A model generated the notes under the pieces. The model was given only the letters and a program-made list of their open reading frames with translations. It had not been told where the DNA came from and made no database searches. The translations under genes and the position numbers were made by a program. 64,000 nucleotides of DNA from the NCBI RefSeq assembly GCF_032444005.1, contig NC_091283.1, positions 270,878,001 through 270,942,000 on the forward strand, written 5' to 3'. Shown one piece after another: positions 30,166 to 63,989 of this stretch (position 1 is the first letter of the stretch; every line of letters begins with the position of its first letter). This DNA is from Ranitomeya imitator (lineage: Eukaryota).

Positions 30166-30425
30166 AACGCGGACATCACTATGCAGTTTCTAAGCTCTGA
30201 CATTACTCACTGATGCCGAAACCCGGAGGGGACGAAAAGGAAGCGTAACAACCGAGAAGTGCATGCCGCCCTATGGATGACTGACAAAAAAAAAAAAAAC
30301 TCTCAAAAGTTCAAAGAATTAGTCTTATTTTTATCTTGAGAAGCAGCCGGGATCCGGCGCGGCGGCACTTGTGGTGAAAGGACGCCTATACAATATCGTA
30401 CAAGCAGCAGCCATGTCTCCGGCCC

Positions 30426-31198
30426 TCAGACCTCTTCATGGTGGAATGCCCATTTGTGTTTCATGAAGTGGGACTTGTGAGCGAAGCGTTTCCCGCACAG
30501 GCGGCACATGATTGGCTTCTCGTGGTCGTGGATCTTCTCGTGTTTCGCCAGCTGGGACTTGGTGTCGAATCGATGGTCGCACTTGCTGCAGGAGATGGTC
30601 TTGCCTTTGGTGTGCCTCCTCTGGTGAACCAGCAGACTGCACTTATGGCCGAATTTCCTTCCGCACTGGTCACACTCGAAGGGTTTTTCTCCGGTGTGCG
30701 CCCGCTGGTGGATGATGAACTGGGACTTGTAGTCATACTGGATGCCGCAGATGGTGCAGGCGTAGCGTTTCACCGCGTGGTTCTCCGCCCGGTGCTTGAT
30801 CAACAAGGACTTGGTGACAAACACTTGGCCGCAGTCCTCGCACTCCACGTCCACCTCCTCCACCTCGTAACTCTTTATGTGCTTCTGGGACTTGAGGTGC
30901 CTCCTGAAGGCCAGTCTCTTGGGGAAGGTCATGTCACACTTCTTGCAGTGGTAGATTCGGCTCTTTCCACGGAGTAAATGGTATTTCTTCAGTTTGGAGC
31001 CTCCGTTGGGTGCAGCGTCACCGGACGAGCCTGGAAGAATGGAGAAGTCCTCATCCCCTAGCATCGAGTCCCCGCCATCCTCGTCTTCTGAAAGCAGCTC
31101 GGACTCGCTGTACTCGCTGACCACCCCGTCCGGCAGCCATTCCGGGGAGTTCGGCTGCTTTGTGGTCGCTTTGCCTTCTTCCTCGCTGCCAGATTCAT
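30426..31198 (-). CDS. Terminal exon with six C2H2 fingers
   Basis: ORF 30426-31259; acceptor tctctcccatcacag|at at 31199; acidic region followed by six CxxC...H..H units. Confidence 0.9.
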
Positions 31199-34100
31199 CT
31201 GTGATGGGAGAGAAAAGGGAAGCCATGATTTTTACACATTTATCGTTTTCCAACCACAAGATGGCGTCTGACGTGGTCAGTGGAGCCTACCTGAGTCTGT
31301 ATCGTCCGCCATTTCTGTGACGGCGTCCTCCTCCTCCACGGACACATCGCCGTACAGCTCCCTGTGAGACTTAATATAGTCCCACTCCTCGGTGGAGAAA
31401 TACATGGCGATGTCGTCACACTTCACCGGCACCTGCCACATAAGAAGTCAGGGTGACCGCTGGTGAGACCACCACGGCACGTATGAGGGGCACTGTCACA
31501 CTCACCTCCTTAGTATTGTCGGGGGGGTCCTCGCGATCAGCAAGCAGCCATTTCTATACAAGAGGACACTGATGTTAGTCACAAAAGTATCTGTTAACAA
31601 TCATTACCCTGCAGGAGCGAAGACCCCAAAAACCCACGGATGGCTGTAAATGGTTAATGGAGGCGGAAGGTGGACACGCACAAGTCCTGACATGGACGGA
31701 AATCATGGCACGGTGTAAACGTGTCCCGGTCACAGGACAGAGGAGAACACGACCACGGGCAAACTTACGTCTCCGGTCAGAAGGGCCACGATCTCCAGGA
31801 TCTGATGCAGGAACTTCTGTGTCACCATCTTGGAGGCTTCTTCAATAAACGGAGTGTTCAGCAAATGCTGCATGAGCGAGACCTGAGGAGAGAAAACAGG
31901 GCGTCCGTATAGGCTGGGATTACAGGGACGGGGTGCAGCGTCCATATACACTTGGATTAAGGGGACGCGGTGCAGAGTTCGTATACACTTAGATTACAGG
32001 GACGGGATCAGCGTCCATACGGCCGTGGGTTATAGTCAGGGGGTGCAGCGTCCATATGGCCAAGGGTTATAGTCAGGGGGTGCAGCGTCCATATGGCCAA
32101 GGGTTATAGTCAGGGGGTACAGCGTCTATATAGCCGTGTATATAGTCTGGGGGTGCAGCATCCATGTGGCCGTGTATATAGTCCGGGGGTGCAGCGTCCA
32201 TATGGCCGTGTATATAGTCAGGGGGTGCAGCGTCCATATAGCCATGTATATAGTCCGGGGGTGCAGCGTCCATATGGCCGTGTGCATAGTCAGGGGGTGC
32301 AGCGCCTATATGGTCTTGGCTTATAGTCAGGGGGTGCAGCGTCTATATGGCCGTGTATATAGACCGGGGGTGCAGCGTCCATATGGCCATGTATATAGTG
32401 TGGGGGTGCAGCGTCCATATAGCCATGTATATAGTCCGGGGGTGCAGCGTCCATATGGCCAAGGGTTATAGTCCGGGGGTGCAGCGTCCATATGGCCGTG
32501 TATATAGTCCGGGTGTACAGCGTCCATATGGCAGTGTATATAGTCCGGGGGTGCAGCGTCCATATGGCCGTGTATATAGTCCGGGGGTGCAGCGTCCATA
32601 TGGCCGTGTATATAGTCCGGGTGTACAGCGTCCATATGGCAGTGTATATAGTCCGGGGGTGCAGCGTCCATATGGCCGTGTATATAGTCCGGGGGTGCAG
32701 CGTCCATATGGCCGTGTATATAGTCGGGGTGCAGCATCTATAAGCAGGAGGTATAGCCGACACGGAGACTTACCATCACTTCCTCCATTGCAAAGAACAA
32801 CCTGCTGTCTTTTACGGGGACGTTCCTGGGTAACTGGGAATTGTCTGACGTTGACCCCTGCAGTAAGTCGGACCATTTCTGCTCTTCCGCTTCCTGCGTT
32901 GGAGCCACTGTTTGGGTGCCCCCCGTAGTCATGTCTTTGGGCGGGACCGCAGGACCAAACCGATAGAGGTAGTCAGGTCTGACGCTCCAGGAGTCATCCC
33001 CACGGTTCAGTAAGAACTCGGAGCATTGGACGGCCTTGTCGGACGTGCACGGCCGAGCCTTCAAAGGAGTGAAGAACCTTCCAAACCGCGTGGATGTTGA
33101 CGCTTCGCGGACAAGAATGGGTCTGGTGAGAAGGCCAATGCTGCGGACCCCCCAGTAAGGGTCAGTGCTGGTGGAGACATGCCTCAGTTTGTGGCTCTTA
33201 TCGGCGTACACAGTGACTGCTTCTCTTGATCCACCGCAGCTTGGATCGGACTGGAACGGGACCTCCACCTCCTCCTCCTTCACCAGGTTTCTTTGCAGAC
33301 CAGGAAATATGGTTGGCACAGCGTCAGGCTTGAGCTTCACCTCCGTCCCGCGGATTGTGTAATTAGTTGGGGAAAAGTGATCAGCACACATCCCAAACCT
33401 CTCCGAAGGGCTCATGTCCAGAACCTGCCGGGCAGCGAGGTCCAGATCACCAAAGTTCTGCCCGGTCTGCCGAAGCCACAGCCGTACCATAGAGAAGTTA
33501 CTGGGAAACACGTGAACTGCCACGTTAGGGTTCTGGAGCTCCGTGAAGTTCGGGCAGTCTGTGACAATACATCTCAGTGTGACGTCACCCTGCGGAGGAA
33601 ACACCGCCATCAGAGAAGAGCGTGTACTATACAGACACCCCAGAGCAAGCGAAAAACACCGGACACAAGAAAAGACCGTGAACGTACAAGGAAGGAAAGA
33701 AAGAATACCATGTACAGTTTGTCTGCAAGTCACAAACATGGCCGAATGCCGAGCACTGACGCTATAATACTGCCCATATGTACAAGAACTACTATAATAC
33801 TGCCCCCTATGTACAATATAACTACTATAATACTGCCCCCTATGTACAAGAATATAACTGCTATAATACTGCTCCTATGTGCAAGAATATAACTACTATA
33901 ATACTGCATCTTATGTGGAAGAATATAACTACTATAATACTGCTCCTATGTACAAGAATATAACTACGATAATACTGCTCCCTATGTACAAGAATATAAC
34001 TACTATAATACTGCCCCTATGTACAAGAATATAACTACTATAATACTGCCCCTTATGTACAAGAATATAACTACTATAATACTGCTCCTATGTACAAGAA

Positions 34101-37100
34101 TATAACTACTATAATACTGCCCCCTATGTACAAGAATATAACTACTATAATACTGCCCCTATGTACAAGAATATAACTACTATAATACTGCTCCCATGTA
34201 CAAGAATATAACTACTATAATACTGCCCCTATGTACAAGAATATAACTACTATAATACTGCTCCTATGTATAAGAATATAACTACTATAATACTGCTCCT
34301 ATGTACAATAATATAACTACCGTATATACTCGAGTATAAGCCGACCCGAGTATAAGCCGACCCCCCTAATTTTACCACAAAAAACTGGGAAAACTTAATG
34401 ACTCGAGTATAATACACTAGCGAAAAAAGGGGAGTGTTGACACCAAAATATAATAGAGAAAATGTACAAATTTTATTAATAAATACATACAAGGAAAATG
34501 ACATACATACAAAAGCATGGAGGACTATAAAAAATTCCACCCATGCGGAGAGGAGGAAAAGCCAACCGGTACACTAATGGTAAAGCACGTTGATGCACAT
34601 ACGACCTGGGTGGATGGTTCAGAGGGTAAAAGTGAATCAGGATTAAGAGGAATACAAGTAATGAGGGATCATCCCTCCGGTGCCGCACAGGCCCTGTTTA
34701 AGTAAATCATACAATCCTGGATACAACATATCACCAAAGTTATCTGCACTTACCCATCATAAAGTCTGCATCAGCGTGGCCTTCCCACTACCCCTGACGC
34801 GCGTTTCGCGTTAATAGCTTTTTCAAAGGGGAAGTGCAACACTATCCAGGATGTATGTGCATCAACGTGCTTTACCATTAGTGTATCGGTTGGCTTTTCC
34901 TCCTCTCCGCATGGTGGAATTTTTTATAGTCCTCCATGCTTTTGTATGTATAGGTCATTTTCCTTGTATGTATTTATTAATAAAATTTGTACATTTTCTC
35001 TATTATATTTTGGTGTCAACACTCCCCTTTTTTCGCTAGTGTAATATATTTGAATTTAGGAGTGACACTCTTGTGTATACGACTTCATGTTTTGATAATA
35101 GGGAGAGCGTTTTTGGTGGATTATGACCATGCTCTCGGCCACTTATTATATCAAAAGCTTAATGATTATTGTTTGTGACTCGAGTATAAGCCTAGGGTGG
35201 AAAATGCAGCAGCTACCAGTAAGTTTCAAAAGTAAAAATAGATACCAATAAAAGTAAAATTAATTGAGACATCAGAAGGTTAAGTGTTTTTGAATATCCA
35301 TATTGAATCAAGAGCCCCATATAATGCTCCATAAAGTTTGATGGGCCCCATAAGATGCTCCATATTAAAATATGCCCCATATAATGCTGCATAAAGGGTA
35401 ATAAGGGCCTCATAAGATGCTCCATAGAGATATTTGCCCAATATAATGCTACACAAGTGTTATGGCCCCATAAGATGCTCCGCACAGCCACTTGCCCCAT
35501 ATGCTGTGGCTGCCATAAAAAAAAAAAAATCACATACTCACCTCTCTTCGCTCAGGACCCCGGCACTGTCACCTGCTCCTCGTGCGGCTCCGTCTTCGGC
35601 ACTCACGCTCAGCAGAGGGCGCGCACTGACTACGTCACCGCGCCCTCTCACCTGAGTGTCACGGCTGAAGACAGAGCGACACCCGGACCGAGGAGCAGGT
35701 GACTATCGCGCAGCGCAGCGCTCCCCCTCCCCGTATACTTACCTGGTCCTGGCGCTGCGTCCCCGCTTCTTCTTCCTGTATTGAGCGGGCAGCGTCACCG
35801 CTCATATACAGTAATGAATATGCGGCTCCACCCCTATGGGAGGTGGAGCCGCATATTCATTACTGTATATGAGCGGTGCCATGTGACCGCTCAATACAGG
35901 AAGAAGATGCAGCGCTGGAAGATGCAGGGACCGCGCCGGGAGCAGGTAAGTATAATTACACAGCCCCTGCTCCCCCTCCCGTGCCGACCCCGGGTATGAC
36001 TCGAGTATAAGCCGAGAGGGGGACTTTCAGCCCAAAAAAATGGGCTGAAAATCTCGGCTTATACTCGAGTATATACTGTACTATAATACTGCTCCTATGT
36101 ATAAGAATATAACTGGGTCATTCCACATCAAGTGGACCAGTTTTAAAAATCGTCCCCACTCGACCTTCTCCGATTTTGCTGAAAATTTATAAGGATGTAC
36201 ATGTATGTTTGAAAAGAGGTTCTGTACATTTTTAGGGCCAGATCACAAATACATTGGGCACTGTTGACCTTTCACTGGAGGTTCCACCAAGCCTGCGGCT
36301 TCAGCTAAGTGGATTTTGCAAACTTTGGCACATAGCCATTAGAGTTCTATACTGGCTATGATGCTGAAATTAGGCATACTAGCTCAACTTTTGGTGCTAA
36401 ATACGATAAAATTATTACCGGCTATGACAAAACAATATTTCGGCCGCAATTTTGTGTCAAAGTAGCTTGAAAAACGCGTCGCATAAAATTTATGCCGAAC
36501 TTTGCCCATATATAACTCAAGACCAAAAACCAATAGTAACTGGTGCTTTGCCCTGTACACCAAACATCTACATGACTTTGCATTGCTGCAATATCACGGT
36601 CAAAGCATATGTATTTGTGGAAATATTCACACCCACATGATGAAAAATGTAAAAAACCCGAATTTTACCTATTATTAGGTCAAATTTCTCAAAAAGGGTA
36701 CCCCTAAAATATATTAATTCTGATATCATTAGAAAGAGCACATTTTTCTCTACAAGGATCATTGTTTGTTTTTTTGGAGTCTCTCAGTTTAAGAAATGAA
36801 AAATGCCACTGAACATGGTGTTATTTATTAATATGCAATGAATGGTAACTGCACTATTCAAACCCTTGCGTTGGTCCATGGTGGTTATACCACAACCAAT
36901 TCCCTAAGAATTGGTATTATAATCCTATTAAGAATTGTAATAATGCTGTCTTTCGAGAATTGGCAGCCCCTTCGCCTAGGAGCCATGGCCGATAGCCGTG
37001 TAAGGCGAGCCTCGGGCGGTCTCTTTATCGCAGGTTCCGAAGCCTGAGGGTGGGTGTCTTTGCCTAGGATCCCAAGCCTAATATTGGGTATCTTTTGCTG

Positions 37101-40100
37101 GTTCCCAAGCCATAATGTTCAGTCTAAGTGGTCTGGAATTGTTGCTGAATTTGCAACATAATCGGTTCAGAGAAGCTGTATTGTCGGCCCATTGCTGTTG
37201 CAGCTGGTGCTGGAATTATTGCAATGATTGACTGCTCGGGAATCCAGCATGTATCATTTCTCACAGGCCAGTGAAAGAAGCTAGCTGGTCCATGAGGATG
37301 CATAAAATTTATTAATGCATCATGTTCGTCGACTGAAATTTCAGAAATATTTCCAATCCACCAGTTCCTAACGTAAATGCAGGCAATGTATTGCCCTGGC
37401 TGGAGGTTTGCAATTGGCACAAAAGGCATTTCTGATCTGACCGATCTATCTACATGGGCAATGAAAGATGATGGGTCGTTTGACACCCTTGAAATGCGAA
37501 TCTTTTTGTCATCAATTGGCACAAACTGGTGATTTTCTCTTGTTCCAGCAATTGTATGTCCATCTTTGAACCTTTCCTCTTGAACTACCCGTATTTCGTC
37601 AATTTTTTCTTTTGGAACAAAAAAAAAAACTTGATTCCTTGCATTTGCTCATTGCAAAAGTTGAATAAATCCACCGGGGTCAGTATTTGGTTTTCAGTTG
37701 GGCGTTGAAGACTGGCACGAGCTGCCAACCTCTTTGCTGTCCCTCCAATCCCATCACAGGACGACTTTCCATGACTGGTACCAAAAAAATTCCATTCAGC
37801 GCTGATATTGAAATCAGCATTGTGGTGGCACAAGTTGAGAAAATGTTTGTACTGGGCTGCAGATCCATCGCTGAAGTAGTGGATATGACGAATCCCATAG
37901 ATGAGAGTCTTGAGATACTCCACAATTACTGTTAAGAAAGTGTGGACTGCAACTGTGTCATGTCGTGAGCAATCGCTGATTATGCACAAGCTGATGTTCT
38001 GCGCAGCTTCACCATTTAACTCCTTGAAGTAAATTACAAATGGGTGCACTGTAGCGTGACTATTTTCAATATGAGGGAAATGTTTGTTGCCTATCGGGAT
38101 CGGAATGGCCCTGAAATTGGATTTTCCAAGTTTTGTGAGCGTCGGCCAAAGTGATGCGTAACCGTTGGATCTGCTGGAACACATTCCGTTTGTGTGAGTA
38201 CCATTCACCAAAATGTCAAACTAATGCTTGCAGCATGCCCAGTCAATGATGATTACAAAGAGCTCATATGCAAAATGCTCTGTGGAATTGAATCCAAGGA
38301 CTGTATGCTAGGCCGTTGTGATAAATGCCCGGGTCCTGAAGTTTTAAAAGAATTTCTAGTCAATGTGTTTGTCAACAGTGACCCTGAAGATATTATTGAG
38401 TTCAAACAATGGATTCACACTGATCGAGACATGCTTGATACCAAACAATTGACTATAGAAGATTTCATTGAAGAATTGGTTTTGAAAATTTCTAAACTAT
38501 GTAGCCATCACTACATCGCCAAGCATCAAAGTTGCTTTCTGAAATCGTTGAAGGAAAATCTGAGACCTGGAGAGCTTGTGATCCTTATGGACTTTGCTGA
38601 AAATTACTCATTTATTGCTCAAGAAGCCATTCAAGGTTTCCACCGGGAAAATAGTCACGCTACAGTACACCCATTTGTAATTTACTTCAAGGAGTTAAAT
38701 GGTGAAGCTGCGCAGAACATCAGCTTGTGCATAATCAGCGATTGCTCACGACATGACACAGTTGCAGTCCACACTTTCTTAACAGTAATTGTGGAGTATC
38801 TCAAGACTCTCATCTATGGGATTCGTCATATCCACTACTTCAGCGATGGATCTGCAGCCCAGTACAAACATTTTCTCAACTTGTGCCACCACAATGCTGA
38901 TTTCAATATCAGCGCTGAATGGAATTTTTTTGGTACCAGTCATGGAAAGTCGCCCTGTGATGGGATTGGAGGGACAGCAAAGAGGTTGGCAGCTCGTGCC
39001 AGTCTTCAACGCCCAACTGAAAACCAAATACTGACCCCGGTGGATTTATTCAACTTTTGCAATGAGCAAATGCAAGGAATCAAGTTTTTTTTTTTGTTCC
39101 AAAAGAAAAAAAAATTGACGAAATACGGGTAGTTCAAGAGGAAAGGTTCAAAGATGGACATACAATTGCTGGAACAAGAGAAAAATCACCAGTTTGTGCC
39201 AATTGATGACAAAAAGATTCGCATTTCAAGGGTGTCAAACGACCCATCATCTTTCATTGCCCATGTAGATAGATCGGTCAGATCAGAAATGCCTTTTGTG
39301 CCAATTGCAAACCTCCAGCCAGGGCAATACATTGCCTGCATTTACGATAGGAACTGGTGGACTGGAAATATTTCTGAAATTTCAGTCGACGAGCATGATG
39401 CATTAATACATTTTATGCATCCTCATGGACCAGCTAGCTTCTTTCACTGGCCTGTGAGAAATGATACATGCTGGATTCCCGAGCAGTCAATCATTGCAAT
39501 AATTCCAGCACCAGCTGCAACAGCAATGGGCCGACAATACAGCTTCTCTGAACCGATTATGTTGCAAATTCAGCAACAATTCCAGACCACTTAGACTGAA
39601 CATTATGGCTTGGGAACCAGCAAAAGATACCCAATATTAGGCTTGGGATCCTAGGCAAAGACACCCACCCTCAGGCTTCGGAACCTGCGATAAAGAGACC
39701 GCCCGAGGCTCGCCTTACACGGCTATCGGCCATGGCTCCTAGGCGAAGGGGCTGCCAATTCTCGAAAGACAGCATTATTACAATTCTTAATAGGATTATA
39801 ATACCAATTCTTAGGGAATTGGTTGTGGTATAACCACCATGGACCAACGCAAGGGTTTGAATAGTGTACTTACCATTCATTGCGTATTAATAAATAACAC
39901 CATGTTCAGTGGCATTTTTCATTTCTTAAACTGAGAGACTCCAAAAAAACAAACAATGATCCTTGTAGAGAAAAATGTGCTCTTTCTAATGATATCAGAA
40001 TTAATATATTTTAGGGGTACCCTTTTTGAGAAATTTGACCTAAAAATAGGTAAAATTCGTTTTTTTTAGGTTTTTCATCATATGTGGGTGTGAATATTTC

Positions 40101-40907
40101 CACAAATACATATGCTTTGACCGTGATATTGCAGCAATGCAAAGTCATGTAGATGTTTGGTGTACAGGGCAAAGCACCAGTTACTATTGGTTTTTGGTCT
40201 TGAGTTATATATGGGCAAAGTTCGGCTTAAATTTTATGCGACGCGTTTTTCAAGCTATTTTGACACAAAATTGCGGCCGAAATATTGTTTTGTCATAGCC
40301 GGTAATAATTTTATCCTATTTAGCACCAAAAGTTGAGCTAGTATGCCTAATTTCAGCATCATAGCCAGTATAGAACTCTAATGGCTATGTGCCAAAGTTT
40401 GCAAAATCCTCTTAGCTGAAGCCGCAGGCTTGGTGGAACCTCCAGTGAAAGGTCAACAGTGCCCAATGTATTTGAGATCTGGCCCTAAAAATGTACAGAA
40501 CCTCTTTTCAAACATACATGTACATCCTTATAAATTTTCAGCAAAATCGGAGAAGGTCAAGTGGGGACCACTGGTCCACTTGACATGGAATTACCCAACT
40601 ACTATAATACTGCTCCCTATGTACAAGAATATAACTACTATAATACTGCCCCCTATGTACAAGAATATAACTACTATAATACTGCCTCTATGTACAAGAA
40701 TATAACTACTATAATACTGCCCTTATGTACAAGAATATAACTACTATAATACTGCTCCTATGTACAAGAATATAACTATAATAATAATCTTTATTTTTAT
40801 ATAGCGCTAACATATTCCGCAGCGCTTTACAGTTTTGCACACATTATCATCACTGTCCCCGATGGGGCTCACAATCTAGATTCCCTATCAGTATGTCTTT
40901 GGAATGT

Positions 40908-40938
<31 letters not shown>

Positions 40939-41664
40939 ACGCAAACACGGAGAGAACATACAAACTCTTTGCAGATGTTGTCCTGGGTGGGATTAGAACC
41001 CAGGACCCCAGCGCTGCAAGGCTGCTGTGCTAACCACTGCGCCACCGTGCAACTACTATAATACTGCTCCTATGTACAAGTATGTACAAGAATATAACTA
41101 CTATAATATACTACAATATAACTTCTATAATACTGTTATTTATGAGTAAGCCCATACTGGCACTGCAAGTGGTGAGTGACTTGCCGACTGCTCCGGTTCT
41201 GGGTGGATGGGACTTGTGGAAGAAGTGTGGGAGAACGGCTGCTCCGTCTTCAGCGGCGGGGTGATGCAGGAGGTGTTGGTCCCGCTGGCGGACGGAGTCG
41301 GTGATGAAGAGTCGTAGTCGCACTCTTCAGTTTTGATGTGGACTATCCTGGAGTCTAATGTCGGAGATGAAAGTGAAGGCCGCTGGATTATCAGTGTGGG
41401 GGTCGCATCCTTCTTCAGGACCCTGCGCCCGTCCACCATCGTGTAGCTCTCCGGGGAGAAGTGGCAAGAACACATCCGGTACAAGGATTTTGATTTGTCA
41501 TCTAGGATTTTCTGGGAAATTTCCTCCACTTCTTGGAAGTTGAGTCCGGTCTGCAGGAGCCAAGTCTTGATGTGGTCGCTGTTGTCTGGGAATGGATGCA
41601 GTGTCACGCCGGGGACATCGCTCCTCCAGGTTATCGGACATTCCTTGACAATACAAGACGTCAT
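30426..41664 (-). CDS. 2xTHAP + KRAB-A-like + 6xC2H2 zinc-finger gene, predicted 790 aa; exons 41664-41185, 33589-32774, 31882-31769, 31553-31506, 31432-31291, 31198-30426
   Basis: Splice phases are consistent (0,0,0,0,1) and 480+816+114+48+142+773=2373 nt is open. It has two THAP signatures (CxxxxC..H.FP..W..CxxHF..A.PT), VPVKCDDIAMYFSTEEW, and six C2H2 fingers including a TGEKP linker. The first intron needs a GC donor. Confidence 0.75.
31920..32735. repeat. 36-bp minisatellite (ggggtgcagcgtccatatggccgtgtatatagtccg), intronic
   Basis: Visible period. Confidence 0.95.
32774..33589 (-). CDS. Second THAP-domain exon
   Basis: Acceptor tttcctccgcag|ggt; RCIVTDCP...VHVFP...WL...MCADHFSP...LKPDAVPTIF; donor atg|gtaagt. 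Confidence 0.85.
34413..35175. mobile_element. Palindromic Penelope-like insertion nested in the MITE
   Basis: 14-bp TSD tgactcgagtataa (34399-34412, 35176-35189); inverted arms 34413-34602 and 34853-35043; hammerhead in the spacer. Confidence 0.75.
34791..34831 (-). ncRNA. Minimal type I hammerhead ribozyme, U3:A8 variant
   Basis: Minus strand reads cccct-TTGAAAA-a-gc-tattaac-gc-GAAA-cgcgcg-TC-agggg. Stem III is a perfect palindrome (ACGCGCGT) and the cleavage triplet is GUC. Confidence 0.7.
36115..40596 (+). mobile_element. Sola2-like DNA transposon derivative with about 1.95-kb inverted arms
   Basis: GGG...CCC termini with 4-bp TSD AACT (36111-36114, 40597-40600). Transposase motifs IGFSKFC, MDFAENY, YFSDG..AQYK and TSHGKSPCDGIGGTAKR. 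Arms at 36115-38067 and 38647-40596. The superfamily call is from recalled motif and terminus rules. Confidence 0.75.
38071..39594 (+). pseudogene. 5'-truncated, frameshifted DDE transposase
   Basis: ORFs 38194-39132 and 39154-39594, plus an upstream stretch with an in-frame stop near 38153. Confidence 0.8.
40779..41050 (-). mobile_element. tRNA-derived SINE (V-SINE-like core) with L2 3' tail
   Basis: A box tggcgcagtgg, B box ggttctaatcc, core gtttgcgtgggtttcctccggg. The tail matches the L2 3' end at 14786-14850. Apparent TSD aacta. Confidence 0.85.
41185..41664 (-). CDS. First coding exon, THAP domain 1
   Basis: Acceptor gtttcttgcag|gATG; MTSCIVKECP...TLHPFP...WL...MCSCHFSPESY...KKDATPTL; inferred donor tcg|gcaagt. 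Confidence 0.8.
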
Positions 41665-41904
41665 CCTGCAAGAAACACAAAAGGCCAAAGCATTGGAGAC
41701 GGCACTGGCACCTGTATAATACATATAATGGATGATGACACGGCTGCATTAGTCCTGGCACCCCTATAATACATATAATGGATGATGACACTGGTTGGTG
41801 TTCACACATGTATAAAAGATGTTGTGTGCACAGGTCCAAAGACTCTGCAAGAAAGAAATGGGGAGGTTAGGACGACCGCAGGTAGGGGAATGGGGGGGGG
41901 GGGG

Positions 41905-43935
41905 TGTTTCAGTAAAGAGGAGAAGGGACAAGGCCGGCAGGAGGTAATGTGAGGGGTCAGTAAAGAGGAGAAGGGACAAGGCCGGCAGGAGGTAATGTGA
42001 GGGGTCAGTAAAGAGCAGAAGGGACAAGGCCGGCAGGAGGTAATGTGAGGGGTCAGTAAAGAGGAGAAGGGACGAGGCCAGCAGGAGGTAATGTGAGGGG
42101 TCAGTAAAGAGGAGAAGGGACAAGGCCGGCAGGAGGTAATGTGAGGGGTCAGTAAAGAGCAGAAGGGACAAGGCCGGCAGGAGGTAATGTGAGGGGTCAG
42201 TAAAGAGCAGAAGGGACAAGGCCGGCAGCAGGCAATGTGAGGGGTCAGTAAAGAGGAGAAGGGACAAGGCCGGCAGCAGGCAATGTGAGGGGTCAGTAAA
42301 GAGGAGAAGGGACGAGGCCGGCAGGAGGTAATGTGAGGGGTCAGTAAAGAGGAGAAGGGACAAGGCCGGCAGGAGGTAATGTGAGGGGTCAGTAAAGAGG
42401 AGAAGGGACGAGGCCGGCAGGAGGTAATGTGAGGGGTCAGTAAAGAGGAGAAGGGACAAGGCCGGCAGCAGGCAATGTGAGGGGTCAGTAAAGAGGAGAA
42501 GGGACGAGGCCAGCAGGAGGTAATGTGAGGGGTCAGTAAAGAGGAGAAGGGACAAGGCCGGCAGGAGGTAATGTGAGGGGTCAGTAAAGAGCAGAAGGGA
42601 CAAGGCCGGCAGGAGGTAATGTGAGGGGTCAGTAAAGAGCAGAAGGGACAAGGCCGGCAGCAGGCAATGTGAGGGGTCAGTAAAGAGGAGAAGGGACAAG
42701 GCCGGCAGCAGGCAATGTGAGGGGTCAGTAAAGAGGAGAAGGGACGAGGCCGGCAGGAGGTAATGTGAGGGGTCAGTAAAGAGGAGAAGGGACAAGGCCG
42801 GCAGGAGGTAATGTGAGGGGTCAGTAAAGAGGAGAAGGGACGAGGCCGGCAGCAGGCAATGTGAGGGGTCAGTAAAGAGGAGAAGGGACGAGGCCGGCAG
42901 GAGGTAATGTGAGGGGTCAGTAAAGAGGAGAAGGGACAAGGCCGGCAGGAGGTAATGTGAGGGGTCAGTAAAGAGGAGAAGGGACGAGGCCGGCAGGAGG
43001 TAATGTGAGGGGTCAGTAAAGAGGAGAAGGGACAAGGCCGGCAGCAGGCAATGTGAGGGGTCAGTAAAGAGGAGAAGGGACGAGGCCAGCAGGAGGTAAT
43101 GTGAGGGGTCAGTAAAGAGGAGAAGGGACAAGGCCGGCAGGAGGTAATGTGAGGGGTCAGTAAAGAGCAGAAGGGACAAGGCCGGCAGGAGGTAATGTGA
43201 GGGGTCAGTAAAGAGCAGAAGGGACAAGGCCGGCAGCAGGCAATGTGAGGGGTCAGTAAAGAGGAGAAGGGACAAGGCCGGCAGCAGGCAATGTGAGGGG
43301 TCAGTAAAGAGGAGAAGGGACGAGGCCGGCAGGAGGTAATGTGAGGGGTCAGTAAAGAGGAGAAGGGACAAGGCCGGCAGGAGGTAATGTGAGGGGTCAG
43401 TAAAGAGGAGAAGGGACGAGGCCGGCAGGAGGTAATGTGAGGGGTCAGTAAAGAGGAGAAGGGACAAGGCCGGCAGCAGGCAATGTGAGGGGTCAGTAAA
43501 GAGGAGAAGGGACGAGGCCAGCAGGAGGTAATGTGAGGGGTCAGTAAAGAGGAGAAGGGACAAGGCCGGCAGGAGGTAATGTGAGGGGTCAGTAAAGAGC
43601 AGAAGGGACAAGGCCGGCAGGAGGTAATGTGAGGGGTCAGTAAAGAGCAGAAGGGACAAGGCCGGCAGCAGGCAATGTGAGGGGTCAGTAAAGAGGAGAA
43701 GGGACAAGGCCGGCAGCAGGCAATGTGAGGGGTCAGTAAAGAGGAGAAGGGACGAGGCCGGCAGGAGGTAATGTGAGGGGTCAGTAAAGAGGAGAAGGGA
43801 CAAGGCCGGCAGGAGGTAATGTGAGGGGTCAGTAAAGAGGAGAAGGGACGAGGCCGGCAGGAGGTAATGTGAGGGGTCAGTAAAGAGGAGAAGGGACAAG
43901 GCCGGCAGCAGGCAATGTGAGGGGTCAGTAAAGGA
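41905..43935. repeat. 48-bp purine-rich minisatellite, about 42 copies, with 9-unit higher-order structure
   Basis: Unit cagtaaagaggagaagggacaaggccggcaggaggtaatgtgaggggt. Confidence 0.95.
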
Positions 43936-43953
43936 GAGAACAGCTGCGCTCAC

Positions 43954-61897: not shown

Positions 61898-63989
61898 ATG
61901 CCGAAATGTCTTGTGAAGGGCTGTCAACATTCCTCCGGGAGGAAGAGCAGCATCCCCGGAGTGACTCTACACCCGTTTCCCAAAGACTTGGCCATCATTA
62001 AAAAATGGCTCCTGCAGACTAACCAGGACTTCGGGGACCTCGACTTGTTTGCTCAGGGAATTCTGCAAGGACAGTTGGGCGTTTCTCGAATCTGTTCTGT
62101 GCATTTTGCTCCCGAATGTTACCGCTTAGTTGGCTCAGAAAAGTTGCTTTTGGATGGAGCGATTCCAACCAGATTCCCGGATTTAGATAAACCAACAACA
62201 AGAACAGAGGCTGCCGTCAATCCTGCCTTACAAAACCTTATCCTGCCTAAAGGCTTGTGGGCCAACAACGTCTCTGTGGCTTCGAGTATGGCTCCATGGG
62301 GATCGGACATTAAAAGTAGTCAAGCCAATATGGCAGCCACCAATACCATGGGTATTGGCAAATCCTCCCATCCCACCAAGTCCCGTGTTAATTTACCAGG
62401 CATCGTGCTGAGCTCTGAGATGGGTGCATTGCACACTGACACGTCTTCTGGGAAGGTCCACAGAGCCGTCCAGTGGCCGGAATATGAGCACAATGTGAAC
62501 GGAGAAGCATGGAAAGTTCTGCACGACCATTACTACCGCGTGCCGTCTGGCACCAAGTATCAGGACATAAACCGGTACTCGCTCTTGACGGACTACATGT
62601 CGGGGTATGGAATTATGAGCTACTCTGGAGAATCTTATTGGGAGAATGAACTGGTGCGTTGGCTGCTGGTCTGGTTTTGGAGATGTTTGGTGCTTTTGCC
62701 TTTGTCACCTTCTGCCATGTGTTCTTCCCCGCAGTTCTCAATGTTGCAGTGCGTGGCAAGTTTTGTCACGGTGAACCGAAATAACAACATAAAAACGGCA
62801 AGAATCCTAAACCAAGCCCTGGATATCATCTCCACGTTGTCTGAGGAGGTGAGCCTTTCTGCATCTTTGAGGGAAAAATTGGAAAAATTTGGGTTTTAAA
62901 GGTTTATGTCGAGAGGTTTTCCCCTCCCATTACTAGAGATGAGTGGATCCCTGTGCACAGCCATGGTCCAGGTCAGGGCTAGGCCAATTTCGTGAGCTCC
63001 TGAGTTCATTTGCCAGCCAATTGTGACGGCTATCAGGTGGTCTTGTCATGAGCTGTGCCTGCGATCCCTGAGGCTATGGTAATTTGGGCAGCTACTGTAC
63101 ACGACCAGAGAACACTGACCTGGACCAGGGTTGTGCACAGCCATCTTCTCACCCCTACCTAGATAAGTGCTGGACTGCTGAGGACCTTACTGCTACCACC
63201 CCTCATTTATTAAATCAGGGGGTCACAGTTCCACTCTGCACATAGAATTAACGGGAACTTTGAATGGAGGGTCTGTCAACCATGTGCCCTTCTGCTCTAT
63301 ATAGTGTCTACAGGCCATACGTGCATGCTCCAAGGACCCTGTAGTGAAAGTCTGCTGAAGGTCCCCATTGCTGCCATGTTGGAGACCCAACCATAGGCTG
63401 GGCTTCATGAGAGACCATGATTTTAGGCATATTCTTAGCCTCGGTTGGAAGGATGTTGAAGCATATTCACCATGAGCTGTGGACCCTCGCTGCACGGGAG
63501 TCTGTGAGTTCATTGTAACTTCACCCCTCCCACCACTGGAGGCGCTGTTTCTTCTCAGTGATGTGAGAATTGTGCTACAAACCTGTGGAAACTGTAGAAA
63601 GGCTCCTGGTGCTGTGATTGGAGACTGGATGCATTGGGGTCTGTCGGCGCCCGATAAGTCTCTAGATTTCCCCGTTCCTCAGTGTTCACATCTTGTTTTC
63701 AGGAATGGGTGATCGTGAACAAGAACTCCATCAATAAAGGTCTGCAGGAGCTGACTGGAGAGGTGAGCGGTTGTCCGGTTTCATCCTTGATGTCAGACAT
63801 TCGCTGGCTGCTCATATAAAAAATACCGTTGTGTTTCCCAGTTTCCCGTTAAGTGTGACGATGTAGCGGTATACTTCACGAAGGATGAGTGGAGCTATAT
63901 AGATCAGCACAGGGCGGACTACCAGGACTTTCTTACTGACAATAAACCAGCGAATCACACGTGGGAAGTCCCCGAACACTGGGATTCTG
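61898..63989 (+). CDS. THAP + KRAB-A-like gene, partial; exons 61898-62653, 62735-62848, 63703-63762, 63842-63989; continues beyond the window
   Basis: THAP MPKCLVKGC...TLHPFP...KKWL...ICSVHF...AIPTRF; 114-nt ARILNQALDIISTLSEE exon; FPVKCDDVAVYFTKDEW. Splice phases 0,0,0,1 match the minus-strand paralog. Acceptor tcatttttcag 9 nt before the ATG. Confidence 0.8.

Follow-up and report, generated by a model that had tools for sequence, protein, structure and literature searches.

A conserved two-THAP member of the anuran KRAB-type zinc-finger family, annotated but unstudied, in Ranitomeya imitator

We analyzed a 64-kb window of the Ranitomeya imitator genome, in which six coding exons on the minus strand (41664-30426) join into a 790-aa open frame (Table 1). 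This six-exon frame, proposed in an initial annotation made from the sequence alone, was borne out by the splice sites, which are good at all exons on inspection, by the joined frame, and by the identity of every residue to RefSeq XP_069605309.1 ("uncharacterized protein isoform X2"). The protein opens with two THAP modules separated by a linker and called THAP1 and THAP2 by position. A conserved disordered linker leads from the second of these to the product of a 38-aa exon, after which come a 16-aa exon, the KRAB-A-like exon and, at the C-terminal end, an acidic tract followed by six C2H2 fingers. The parts listed beforehand (two separate THAP exons, the 38-aa and KRAB-A-like exons, the acidic region and six fingers) are all present, and a Pfam scan of the exons returned THAP twice, KRAB, and zf-C2H2 in six stretches, each above its curated cutoff. 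The acidic, Ser-rich tract (aa 534-612) is encoded in the last exon.

Table 1 Coordinates of the two-THAP gene and its neighboring paralogue in the 64-kb window
Feature	Position	Strand	Details
THAP1 coding exon	41185..41665	-	160 aa; ATG at 41664; from sequence and splice sites
Optional 27-nt extension of the THAP1 exon	41158..41184	-	reaches GT donor CCA/GTATGG; from RefSeq isoform comparison
THAP2 exon	32774..33589	-	272 aa; phase 0-0; contigs cover 32772-33590
38-aa exon	31769..31882	-	phase 0-0; VSLMQHLLNTPFIEEASKMVTQKFLHQILEIVALLTGD; splice joints on both sides in contigs
16-aa exon	31506..31553	-	phase 0-0; KWLLADREDPPDNTKE; joints in four runs
KRAB-A-like exon	31291..31432	-	142 nt; phase 0-1; VPVKCDDIAMYFSTEEWDYIKSHRELYGDVSVEEEDAVTEMADDTDS; Pfam KRAB
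Last coding exon (acidic tract, six C2H2 fingers, stop)	30426..31198	-	stop codon 30428-30426
Paralogue, head-to-head, about 20 kb away	61898..63989	+	THAP exon from 61898; KRAB-like exon 63842-63952; runs off the window

The THAP1 exon has an acceptor 1 nt ahead of its ATG and a GC-type donor (TCG/GCAAGT, phase 0). Use of the optional extension adds ASHSPLAVP and yields the 799-aa RefSeq isoform X1, whose sole difference from the 790-aa model is this 9-aa insert; it is absent from non-dendrobatid orthologues. The THAP2 exon does not open with a start codon, and its first Met, residue 34 of the exon, lies inside the THAP domain, so that THAP2 would rely on THAP1 for a start codon. The two THAP exons begin alike at 8 of 9 nt (G-ATGACGTC vs G-GTGACGTC), a likeness that chance or coding constraint could explain.

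The gene is transcribed and spliced in frame from THAP2 to the fingers. Contigs from four runs of four studies, placed on positions 30400-36399 (the stretch holding the THAP2-to-finger exons but not the THAP1 exon), carry the joints 31198/31291, 31432/31506, 31553/31769 and 31882/32774; single contigs link the THAP2 exon through to the finger exon, and the introns lie at zero depth. The runs had been guessed to be RNA from their records, and the splicing in the contigs shows that they are. When the exact 790-aa protein was looked up among transcript assemblies, no record was returned. The initial annotation had raised the possibility that the THAP and finger exons belong to different genes; the spliced contigs unite the THAP2, KRAB-like and finger exons, whereas the THAP1-THAP2 joint itself was not directly seen. 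The case for splicing of the THAP1 exon to the THAP2 exon is made by four observations. The same contigs extend 539-551 nt 5' of 33590, a length close to that of the THAP1 exon (481 nt) together with a short 5' UTR, and they match one base more, the G at 33590, as expected if the exon upstream ends in ...TCG. Between 0.67 and 0.83 of the words of the THAP1 exon stretch were present in the RNA-like runs, matching exon-only coverage (0.67-0.80 in the runs that gave the spliced contigs), and the same junction recurs in orthologue gene models of about 20 species.

P-element-type transposases bind DNA through a THAP domain. Both modules carry a complete C2CH signature and an AVPTIF-type C-terminal box. 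THAP1 (aa 1-95, 41664-41380) matches Pfam PF05485 at 42.7 bits (cutoff 23.9; aa 24-111 of its ORF, profile positions 1-86 of 87), and THAP2 (aa 166-258, 33574-33296) at 38.4 bits over the full profile (1-87 of 87; same cutoff). Across 15 species, C4, C9, P26, W35, C65, H68, F69, A87 and P89 of THAP1 are invariant, as are C167, C172, P189, W198, C228, H231, F232, A250, P252, T253, I254 and F255 of THAP2. AF2 models (pLDDT 75-87 for both) suggest two THAP folds with a disordered linker between them. The top four Foldseek matches in the PDB were all THAP domains, namely THAP2 (2D8R, probability 1.00), THAP1 (2KO0 and 2JTG) and the P-element THAP (3KDE, TM-score 0.63 by target), with E-values of only 0.008-0.15. 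THAP1 is 64% identical to hyloid and 43% to ranoid orthologues, and THAP2 80% and 49%. Both domains thus appear to be under purifying selection at the protein level. Neither an HCF-1 binding motif ([DE]HxY) nor a CtBP-type PxDLS motif is conserved.

The linker after THAP2 (aa 259-432, 174 aa) is conserved and predicted to be disordered (pLDDT <40), with no fold or known motif found in it; the structure prediction for aa 259-535 has a mean pLDDT of 38.5. The 38-aa exon contains KFLHQILEIVALLTGD ("ILEIVALLTGD"), the "LLTGD/E" module of frog zinc-finger proteins (ZNFs), which may be linked to the FAX (finger-associated box) of Xenopus ZNFs. It has no Pfam match, is predicted to be helical (helices at pLDDT 50-64), and is 89% identical to hyloid and 54% to ranoid orthologues. 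The KRAB-A-like exon scores 27.4 bits against Pfam PF01352 (cutoff 20.4), covering only profile positions 1-33 of 42, and no KRAB-B was recognized in the gene. The MLE motif at KRAB positions A32-A34 is required for TRIM28 binding and silencing (PMC8835667), and in XFIN of Xenopus laevis a frog KRAB works as a TRIM28-binding repressor domain (PMC3912051). The box described here lacks an MLE-type motif, reading DVSVEE where Discoglossus and Pelobates paralogues have DVMME(N), and orthologues read VVTEE, IIPDD or LLVEE at the equivalent site. The KRAB box is degenerate, its contact motif having decayed to SVE, VTE or IPD across the orthogroup. Because SVE replaces the MLE-type motif (PMC8835667), TRIM28-mediated repression through this box is uncertain.

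The six C2H2 units (Pfam PF00096; C-x2-C-x12-H-x3-5-H) occupy aa 618-787 (~30947-30438), with the canonical HTGEKPF linker confined to the junction of fingers 3 and 4. Among orthologues, fingers 3-5 hardly vary in the residues that contact bases, and fingers 3-6 share 96% identity with hyloid orthologues and 67% with ranoid ones. The pair of fingers at the center, YSQI / HC[ST][VI], is common to Rhinophrynus, Xenopus laevis znf684.L and znf891, Hymenochirus and the adjacent paralogue.

Full-length orthologues with the same part order and both THAP signatures intact were found in about 20 neobatrachian frogs (73-84% identity in hyloids, 41-46% in ranoids), and for many frogs RefSeq already lists the gene as a predicted "uncharacterized protein". 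Among the matches listed, every relative of the same architecture for which a species name was obtained is anuran. Its view that the architecture was uncharacterized held up: we found no paper describing a THAP, KRAB and C2H2 combination in frogs, and RefSeq predictions exist, so the gene is already annotated yet unstudied. In a tree of THAP domains, THAP1 and THAP2 orthologues fell into separate clades (100% and 98% support), each with hyloids and ranoids, and support at deeper nodes was only 28-66%. THAP1 grouped with THAP-only proteins at only 62% support, and some of these relatives have Mutator-like transposase matches below cutoff (23.8 vs 26.5 bits).

The tandem THAP form is older than the hyloid-ranoid split. 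The proposal that THAP exons were shuffled onto a frog KRAB-ZNF scaffold is plausible, because the THAP2 exon is symmetric (0-0), the number of THAP units varies from one to three within the family, and THAP1 and THAP2 lie in different clades. The gene is not new to the R. imitator genome; the proposed event would be ancient and recurrent in this family. The head-to-head paralogue has a THAP 41% identical to THAP1 and a KRAB 49% identical to that of the two-THAP gene (tblastn), and in the THAP tree this domain falls beside the second THAP of neighbor genes in Bufo, Dendropsophus and Rhinoderma (98% support). An inverted-duplicate transposon (36115-40596) lies within the 7.6-kb intron between THAP1 and THAP2. 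We rejected it as the source of the THAP exons, as its ORFs have no THAP match in Pfam, the tandem THAP form is far older, and the whole gene spans only 6.4 kb in Phyllobates.

We compared the gene with known systems. Like KRAB zinc-finger proteins such as XFIN (PMC3912051), it has a separate exon for KRAB-A ahead of a single large C2H2-array exon, is clustered with paralogues, and has the LLTGD/E-type module found ahead of the KRAB box in frog members; unlike them, it adds two N-terminal THAPs, has only six fingers with conserved contact residues, and lacks the MLE-type TRIM28 motif and a recognizable KRAB-B. Relative to human THAP1, THAP2 and THAP11 (PDB 2KO0, 2D8R) and the P-element THAP (3KDE), which include the best structural matches of the frog models, the C2CH signature, the P/W/F residues and the AVPTIF box are shared; the frog THAPs differ from cellular THAP proteins in being tandem, in being fused to KRAB and C2H2, in lacking a conserved HCF-1 motif, and in carrying an insert specific to frogs, QxFGDLDxxAxxVL, that separates the Trp from C-x2-H. 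According to the main text of Cosby et al. on host-transposase fusions, no host partner is as common as KRAB (32 events), and 21% of fusions take their transposase from P element/Kolobok; within that text, "THAP" has 0 occurrences and P element/Kolobok fusions receive no per-gene account (bioRxiv 10.1101/2020.05.07.082677). The likeness is a transposase-type DNA-binding domain spliced to KRAB, and the differences are that the frog gene retains a C2H2 array and has THAP twice; with tree support of 28-66%, its THAP exons could derive from a transposon or from a host THAP gene. Close counterparts among predicted anuran proteins include Xenopus laevis znf684.L (XP_018090897), "zinc finger protein 891" and Rhinophrynus KAM4691677, with two THAPs, an LLTGD-type module, five to six fingers including the same central pair, and a KRAB that is weak in some, but only 28-39% identity. 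With low support, both of their THAPs fall outside the neobatrachian THAP1 and THAP2 clades, which makes the tandem no more than a possible one-to-one orthologue. These proteins are uncharacterized, and their names come from automatic best matches.

We consider it very probable that the locus is one real gene, with isoforms of 790 and 799 aa, belonging to the anuran KRAB-type ZNF family with 5' THAP exons, and that it encodes a regulator. To judge from its domains, the protein would be a nuclear, sequence-specific transcription regulator with a conserved set of genomic targets. As many as three modules (both THAPs and the C2H2 core) may read DNA, giving composite or alternative sites, and the helical LLTGD module would act together with the KRAB-A-like box and the acidic tract in signaling. 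KRAB ancestry makes repression the default guess, and, as the MLE-type motif has decayed in the orthogroup, the effector partner may be other than TRIM28. The THAP exons were most likely gained by exon shuffling or duplication ahead of the hyloid-ranoid split.

Several other explanations were weighed against this one. The annotated protein might merge two transcription units, a THAP1-only gene ending at the TAA at 41140 and a THAP2-KRAB-ZNF gene that begins with a separate non-coding exon upstream. The THAP1 frame does read on to a stop 45 nt beyond the GC donor, a transposon sits in the intron, the joint was not directly seen, and one contig (X1) keeps sequence beyond the THAP2 donor. However, three of the four runs have no coverage over 33600-33799, immediately 5' of the THAP2 acceptor, and X18 has a depth of 3.4 there; no joint is listed from 33590 into 33591-36399; the length of the contig overhang, the lack of a usable start codon in the THAP2 exon, the shared junction in about 20 species and the presence of both donor isoforms in RefSeq also speak against two units. 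Such a chimera is already unlikely, and we give it only a very slight chance. It is likewise unlikely, though less so, that the protein effectively works with one THAP plus fingers, one module (most likely THAP1) being past DNA binding and now serving protein interaction or regulation. THAP1 is the less conserved module in both hyloids and ranoids, dendrobatid THAP1 reads ATPTLI at the AVPTIF box, and related genes in Bufo bufo have isoforms with one or two THAPs; yet the zinc ligands and signature residues of THAP1 are all invariant in 15 species, and it is confidently modeled as a THAP fold.

The gene could also be an ordinary fast-evolving KRAB-ZNF that recruits TRIM28 to silence a lineage-specific repeat, its THAPs helping to recognize P/Kolobok-type transposon ends. 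In keeping with this are its KRAB ancestry, its repeat-rich site beside a paralogue, other transposase-ZNF fusions in the genome region, the transposase association of THAP itself, the weak Mutator-like matches of THAP-only relatives nearest THAP1, and the ability of a frog KRAB to bind TRIM28 (PMC3912051). Against it, orthologues are one-to-one across Neobatrachia with finger contact residues almost unchanged, the reverse of what turnover in an arms race would produce; the KRAB box has lost its MLE-type motif, and the Mutator matches fall under the curated cutoff. We regard a transposon silencer as improbable. Returning to a transcriptional regulator, a more specific form can be held only tentatively: an anuran-specific, deeply conserved transcription factor outside the KRAB/TRIM28 pathway, in which the THAPs and a frozen C2H2 core would read a composite site, the conserved disordered linker and LLTGD helix would recruit a new partner, and the protein would act as a developmental or germline regulator peculiar to frogs rather than silence transposons. 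On this departure from KRAB/TRIM28, the YSQI / HC[ST][VI] core would have been kept since before the pipoid-neobatrachian split.

In kind, the gene is not surprising, as fusions of KRAB to DNA-binding domains of transposase type have been described before and RefSeq already predicted the gene. Its meaning lies in the family: frogs have a whole unstudied group of ZNFs combining KRAB and C2H2 with one to three THAP modules, and in at least one of its lineages the DNA-reading residues have stayed nearly unchanged for a very long time. The two-THAP gene offers a test case for how two unrelated DNA-binding systems work within one factor, how a KRAB box evolves after its TRIM28 contact motif decays, and how new regulators are built by repeated shuffling of THAP exons.

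The locus is one transcribed gene whose product combines a pair of intact THAP modules with a KRAB-A-like box and a finger core under constraint. We assembled six coding exons on the minus strand, with the frame preserved across all junctions, into a 790-aa product. The initial annotation had read this two-THAP, KRAB-A-like, six-finger architecture from the sequence, and frame, splice sites, Pfam matches and RefSeq identity all bear it out. In the Pfam scan it had proposed, two THAP matches scored 42.7 and 38.4 bits against a cutoff of 23.9, a KRAB match covering profile positions 1-33 of 42 reached 27.4 bits against 20.4, and six stretches matched zf-C2H2; the 38-aa exon had no Pfam match. 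Five introns are GT-AG, and the THAP1 donor is of the GC type (TCG/GCAAGT). The position of the start codon relative to the THAP1-exon acceptor implies at least one upstream 5' UTR exon. Because the first Met of the THAP2 exon falls within the domain, intact THAP2 would be translated only via THAP1 (THAP1 and THAP2 denote the first and second modules of the frog gene).

Coordinates of the gene's coding exons and of neighboring features (positions within the window)
Feature	Position	Strand	Basis or remark
THAP1 exon	41665-41185	-	ATG at 41664, one base past acceptor
Two THAP1-exon donors, 27 nt apart	41158-41185	-	
THAP2 exon	33589-32774	-	sequence, splice sites
38-aa (LLTGD) exon	31882-31769	-	sequence, splice sites, RNA joints
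16-aa exon	31553-31506	-	sequence, splice sites, RNA joints
KRAB-A-like exon	31432-31291	-	sequence, splice sites, Pfam, RNA joints
Last exon: acidic Ser-rich tract and six C2H2 fingers	31198-30426	-	sequence, Pfam, RNA joint
48-bp tandem array	41909-43940		42 copies, 95% matches
36-bp tandem array	31901-32742		about 20 copies
Inverted duplication	36115-40596		mirrored ORFs, 208-312 aa
35-bp satellite arrays	33762-34320, 40597-40786		either side of the inverted duplication
Extension pieces of 877-aa annotation	~62104-62024, 60285-60055, 58030-57905	-	
Head-to-head paralogue	61898-63989	+	THAP exon and KRAB-like exon

The 790-aa model matches RefSeq XP_069605309.1 ("uncharacterized protein isoform X2 [Ranitomeya imitator]") without differences, so the gene had already been predicted, though unnamed. 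Isoform X1 (799 aa) differs solely by ASHSPLAVP, supplied by an alternative GT donor (CCA/GTATGG) 27 nt beyond the GC donor; this insert is confined to dendrobatid gene models. A second GenBank annotation (877 aa, "unnamed protein product") is N-terminally extended and splices to 41665. Its extension lies antisense to the paralogue's THAP exon and within repeated sequence, and may reflect either a true 5' UTR exon near 57.9 kb or an ab initio artefact.

The exons are present in about twenty public sequencing runs from eight or nine studies, whose record metadata leave the RNA nature unstated. Alignment over 30400-36399 revealed exon-only depth in four runs from four studies, with spliced joints at 31198/31291, 31432/31506, 31553/31769 and 31882/32774, each in three to four of these runs, indicating that the four contain spliced RNA. 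Single contigs from runs X7 (3033 nt) and X5 (1863 nt) span the finger, KRAB, 16-aa, 38-aa and THAP2 exons and bear an extra 551 and 539 nt, respectively, 5' of the THAP2 exon. At 33600-33799 three of the runs had no depth and the fourth (X18) a depth of 3.4, and no joint was listed in the four runs from 33590 into the remainder of the aligned stretch. The contig alignment extends to 33590, one base beyond the THAP2 acceptor, which fits an upstream exon ending in G, that is, the GC-donor form (...TCG) and not the GT-donor form (...CCA). The THAP1 exon (481 nt) and a leader of 58-70 nt together match the overhang in length, and the same runs contain 0.67-0.80 of the words of 41100-41760, as predicted for exon-only coverage. 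Overhang length, matched base and THAP1-exon words fit a probable THAP1-THAP2 joint. The X7 contig, the longest RNA contig, departs from the window sequence at 30661 (minus strand), within the finger exon, and continues for 823 other nt, probably an assembly-graph switch into paralogous finger sequence; 30400-30690 is covered by separate contigs.

The 48-bp array, with strong GC and AT skew, sits immediately 5' of the THAP1 exon, presumably within the 5' intron, and produces a spurious 731-aa minus-strand ORF. The 36-bp array takes up the greater part of the intron that separates the THAP2 exon from the 38-aa exon and accounts for several long ORFs of repeat sequence on the two strands; it has no RNA contig depth. 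Within the 7.6-kb THAP1/THAP2 intron, a transposon-like unit is duplicated in inverted orientation; its ORFs have no Pfam match, and one and the same 35-bp satellite, where RNA contig depths reach thousands, flanks the duplication on either side. The orthologous Phyllobates gene spans merely 6.4 kb in its entirety, indicating that the content of this intron is lineage-specific.

Full-length orthologues with parts in the same order were found in the dendrobatoids Ranitomeya variabilis, Dendrobates, Phyllobates and Anomaloglossus and in the other hyloids Dendropsophus, Hyla, Leptodactylus, Eleutherodactylus, Rhinoderma and Bufo gargarizans (73-84% identity for the hyloid species aligned, dendrobatoids included), as well as in the ranoids Mantella, Lithobates, Rana temporaria, Hyperolius and Nanorana (41-49%). 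The sole Engystomops record is partial (579 aa).

Mean identity of the R. imitator protein to its orthologues, by region
Region	Hyloid	Ranoid
THAP1	64%	43%
First linker	63%	24%
THAP2	80%	49%
Post-THAP2 linker	70%	37%
38-aa exon	89%	54%
KRAB-A-like box	79%	53%
Acidic tract	65%	28%
Fingers 1-2	89%	46%
Fingers 3-6	96%	67%

All zinc ligands and signature residues of THAP1 and THAP2 are invariant across 15 species. AlphaFold2, run with the orthologue alignment, modelled both modules at pLDDT 75-87 with a disordered linker between them, and the top four PDB fold matches were one structure of the cellular protein THAP2, two of the cellular protein THAP1 and one of the THAP domain of the P element, at modest E-values (0.008-0.15). 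The 174-aa stretch after THAP2 is predicted to be disordered (pLDDT below 40) despite its strongly conserved motifs (RHV.T.TDP.WGVRS.G.LT.P.L, DKAVQCS, RPDYLYRFGPAVPP and VPVKDSRLFFAMEEVM); beyond THAP2, helices are predicted solely in the 38-aa exon region. Residues -1, 2, 3 and 6 are YSQI in finger 3 of all species compared, HC[ST]V in finger 4 of the species compared, and TSQ[KR] in finger 5, except in two ranoids.

A profile scan of retrieved proteins placed the gene in a large anuran family with THAP, LLTGD-type module, KRAB and C2H2 in order and with one, two or occasionally more THAP units per member. Members occur in Discoglossus, Bombina, Xenopus, Hymenochirus, Rhinophrynus, Spea, Pelobates and many neobatrachians. 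Among the matches listed with a species name, all relatives that have this architecture are anurans. The head-to-head paralogue has a single THAP within the window, whereas its Bufo, Dendropsophus and Rhinoderma orthologues have two; its THAP ORF carries a ILNQALDIISTLSEE motif at the tail. Its orthologues share a contig with the studied gene's orthologue in Dendropsophus, Bufo gargarizans, Rhinoderma and Lithobates, the RefSeq numbers of each pair being adjacent or near-adjacent where given. Some have their own extra THAP exon, with isoforms of one or two THAPs.

A maximum-likelihood tree built from THAP modules placed the orthologues' THAP1 and THAP2 in clades with 100% and 98% support, each holding hyloids and ranoids, so the tandem predates the hyloid-ranoid split. 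The two modules were not mutual closest relatives, at deeper nodes with only 28-66% support. The central finger pair YSQI / HC[ST][VI] recurs in Rhinophrynus, Xenopus laevis (znf684.L and "znf891") and Hymenochirus, and is YSQI / HSSV in most neighbor paralogues examined. This shared pair points to descent from one gene that already existed before pipoids and neobatrachians diverged. Two Hyla sarda proteins, P0021 (1173 aa) and P0170 (1393 aa), rank among the closest THAP-only relatives of THAP1; they contain two or three THAP modules and match a Mutator-like transposase below threshold (about 23.5 bits, cutoff 26.5), which makes a transposase source of this kind possible for the THAP exons. 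The earlier proposal that THAP exons were shuffled onto a frog KRAB-ZNF scaffold is plausible and partly supported, though the shuffling is old and has recurred in this family, and its product already figures in gene catalogues. In the literature searched we found no paper describing a THAP, KRAB and C2H2 architecture.

Among described kinds, KRAB zinc-finger proteins and the KRAB-transposase-domain fusions surveyed by Cosby et al. come closest. The frog gene departs from both in combining a retained finger array with a doubled THAP module and a decayed KRAB. The survey ranks KRAB first among host partners and attributes a fifth of fusion events to P element/Kolobok elements (bioRxiv 10.1101/2020.05.07.082677). 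Cellular THAP proteins have the fold in common with the frog modules; the HCF-1 motif is absent from the frog gene.

A frog KRAB, that of XFIN, binds TRIM28 and represses (PMC3912051). TRIM28 binding needs the MLE motif at KRAB-A positions 32-34 (PMC8835667), the place of which is taken in this orthogroup by SVE, VTE or IPD; frog paralogues retain MME. We regard TRIM28-dependent repression by the product as a tentative possibility. A TRIM28-independent role through the LLTGD helix, acidic tract or conserved linker is a somewhat less likely alternative. Action as an arms-race transposon silencer is disfavoured because the gene evolves slowly and has one-to-one orthology. The protein is a putative nuclear, sequence-specific regulator, with a target set that would be conserved among frogs. 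DNA would be read by the C2H2 core and by either or both of the flexibly tethered THAP modules, an arrangement that would permit composite or alternative sites.
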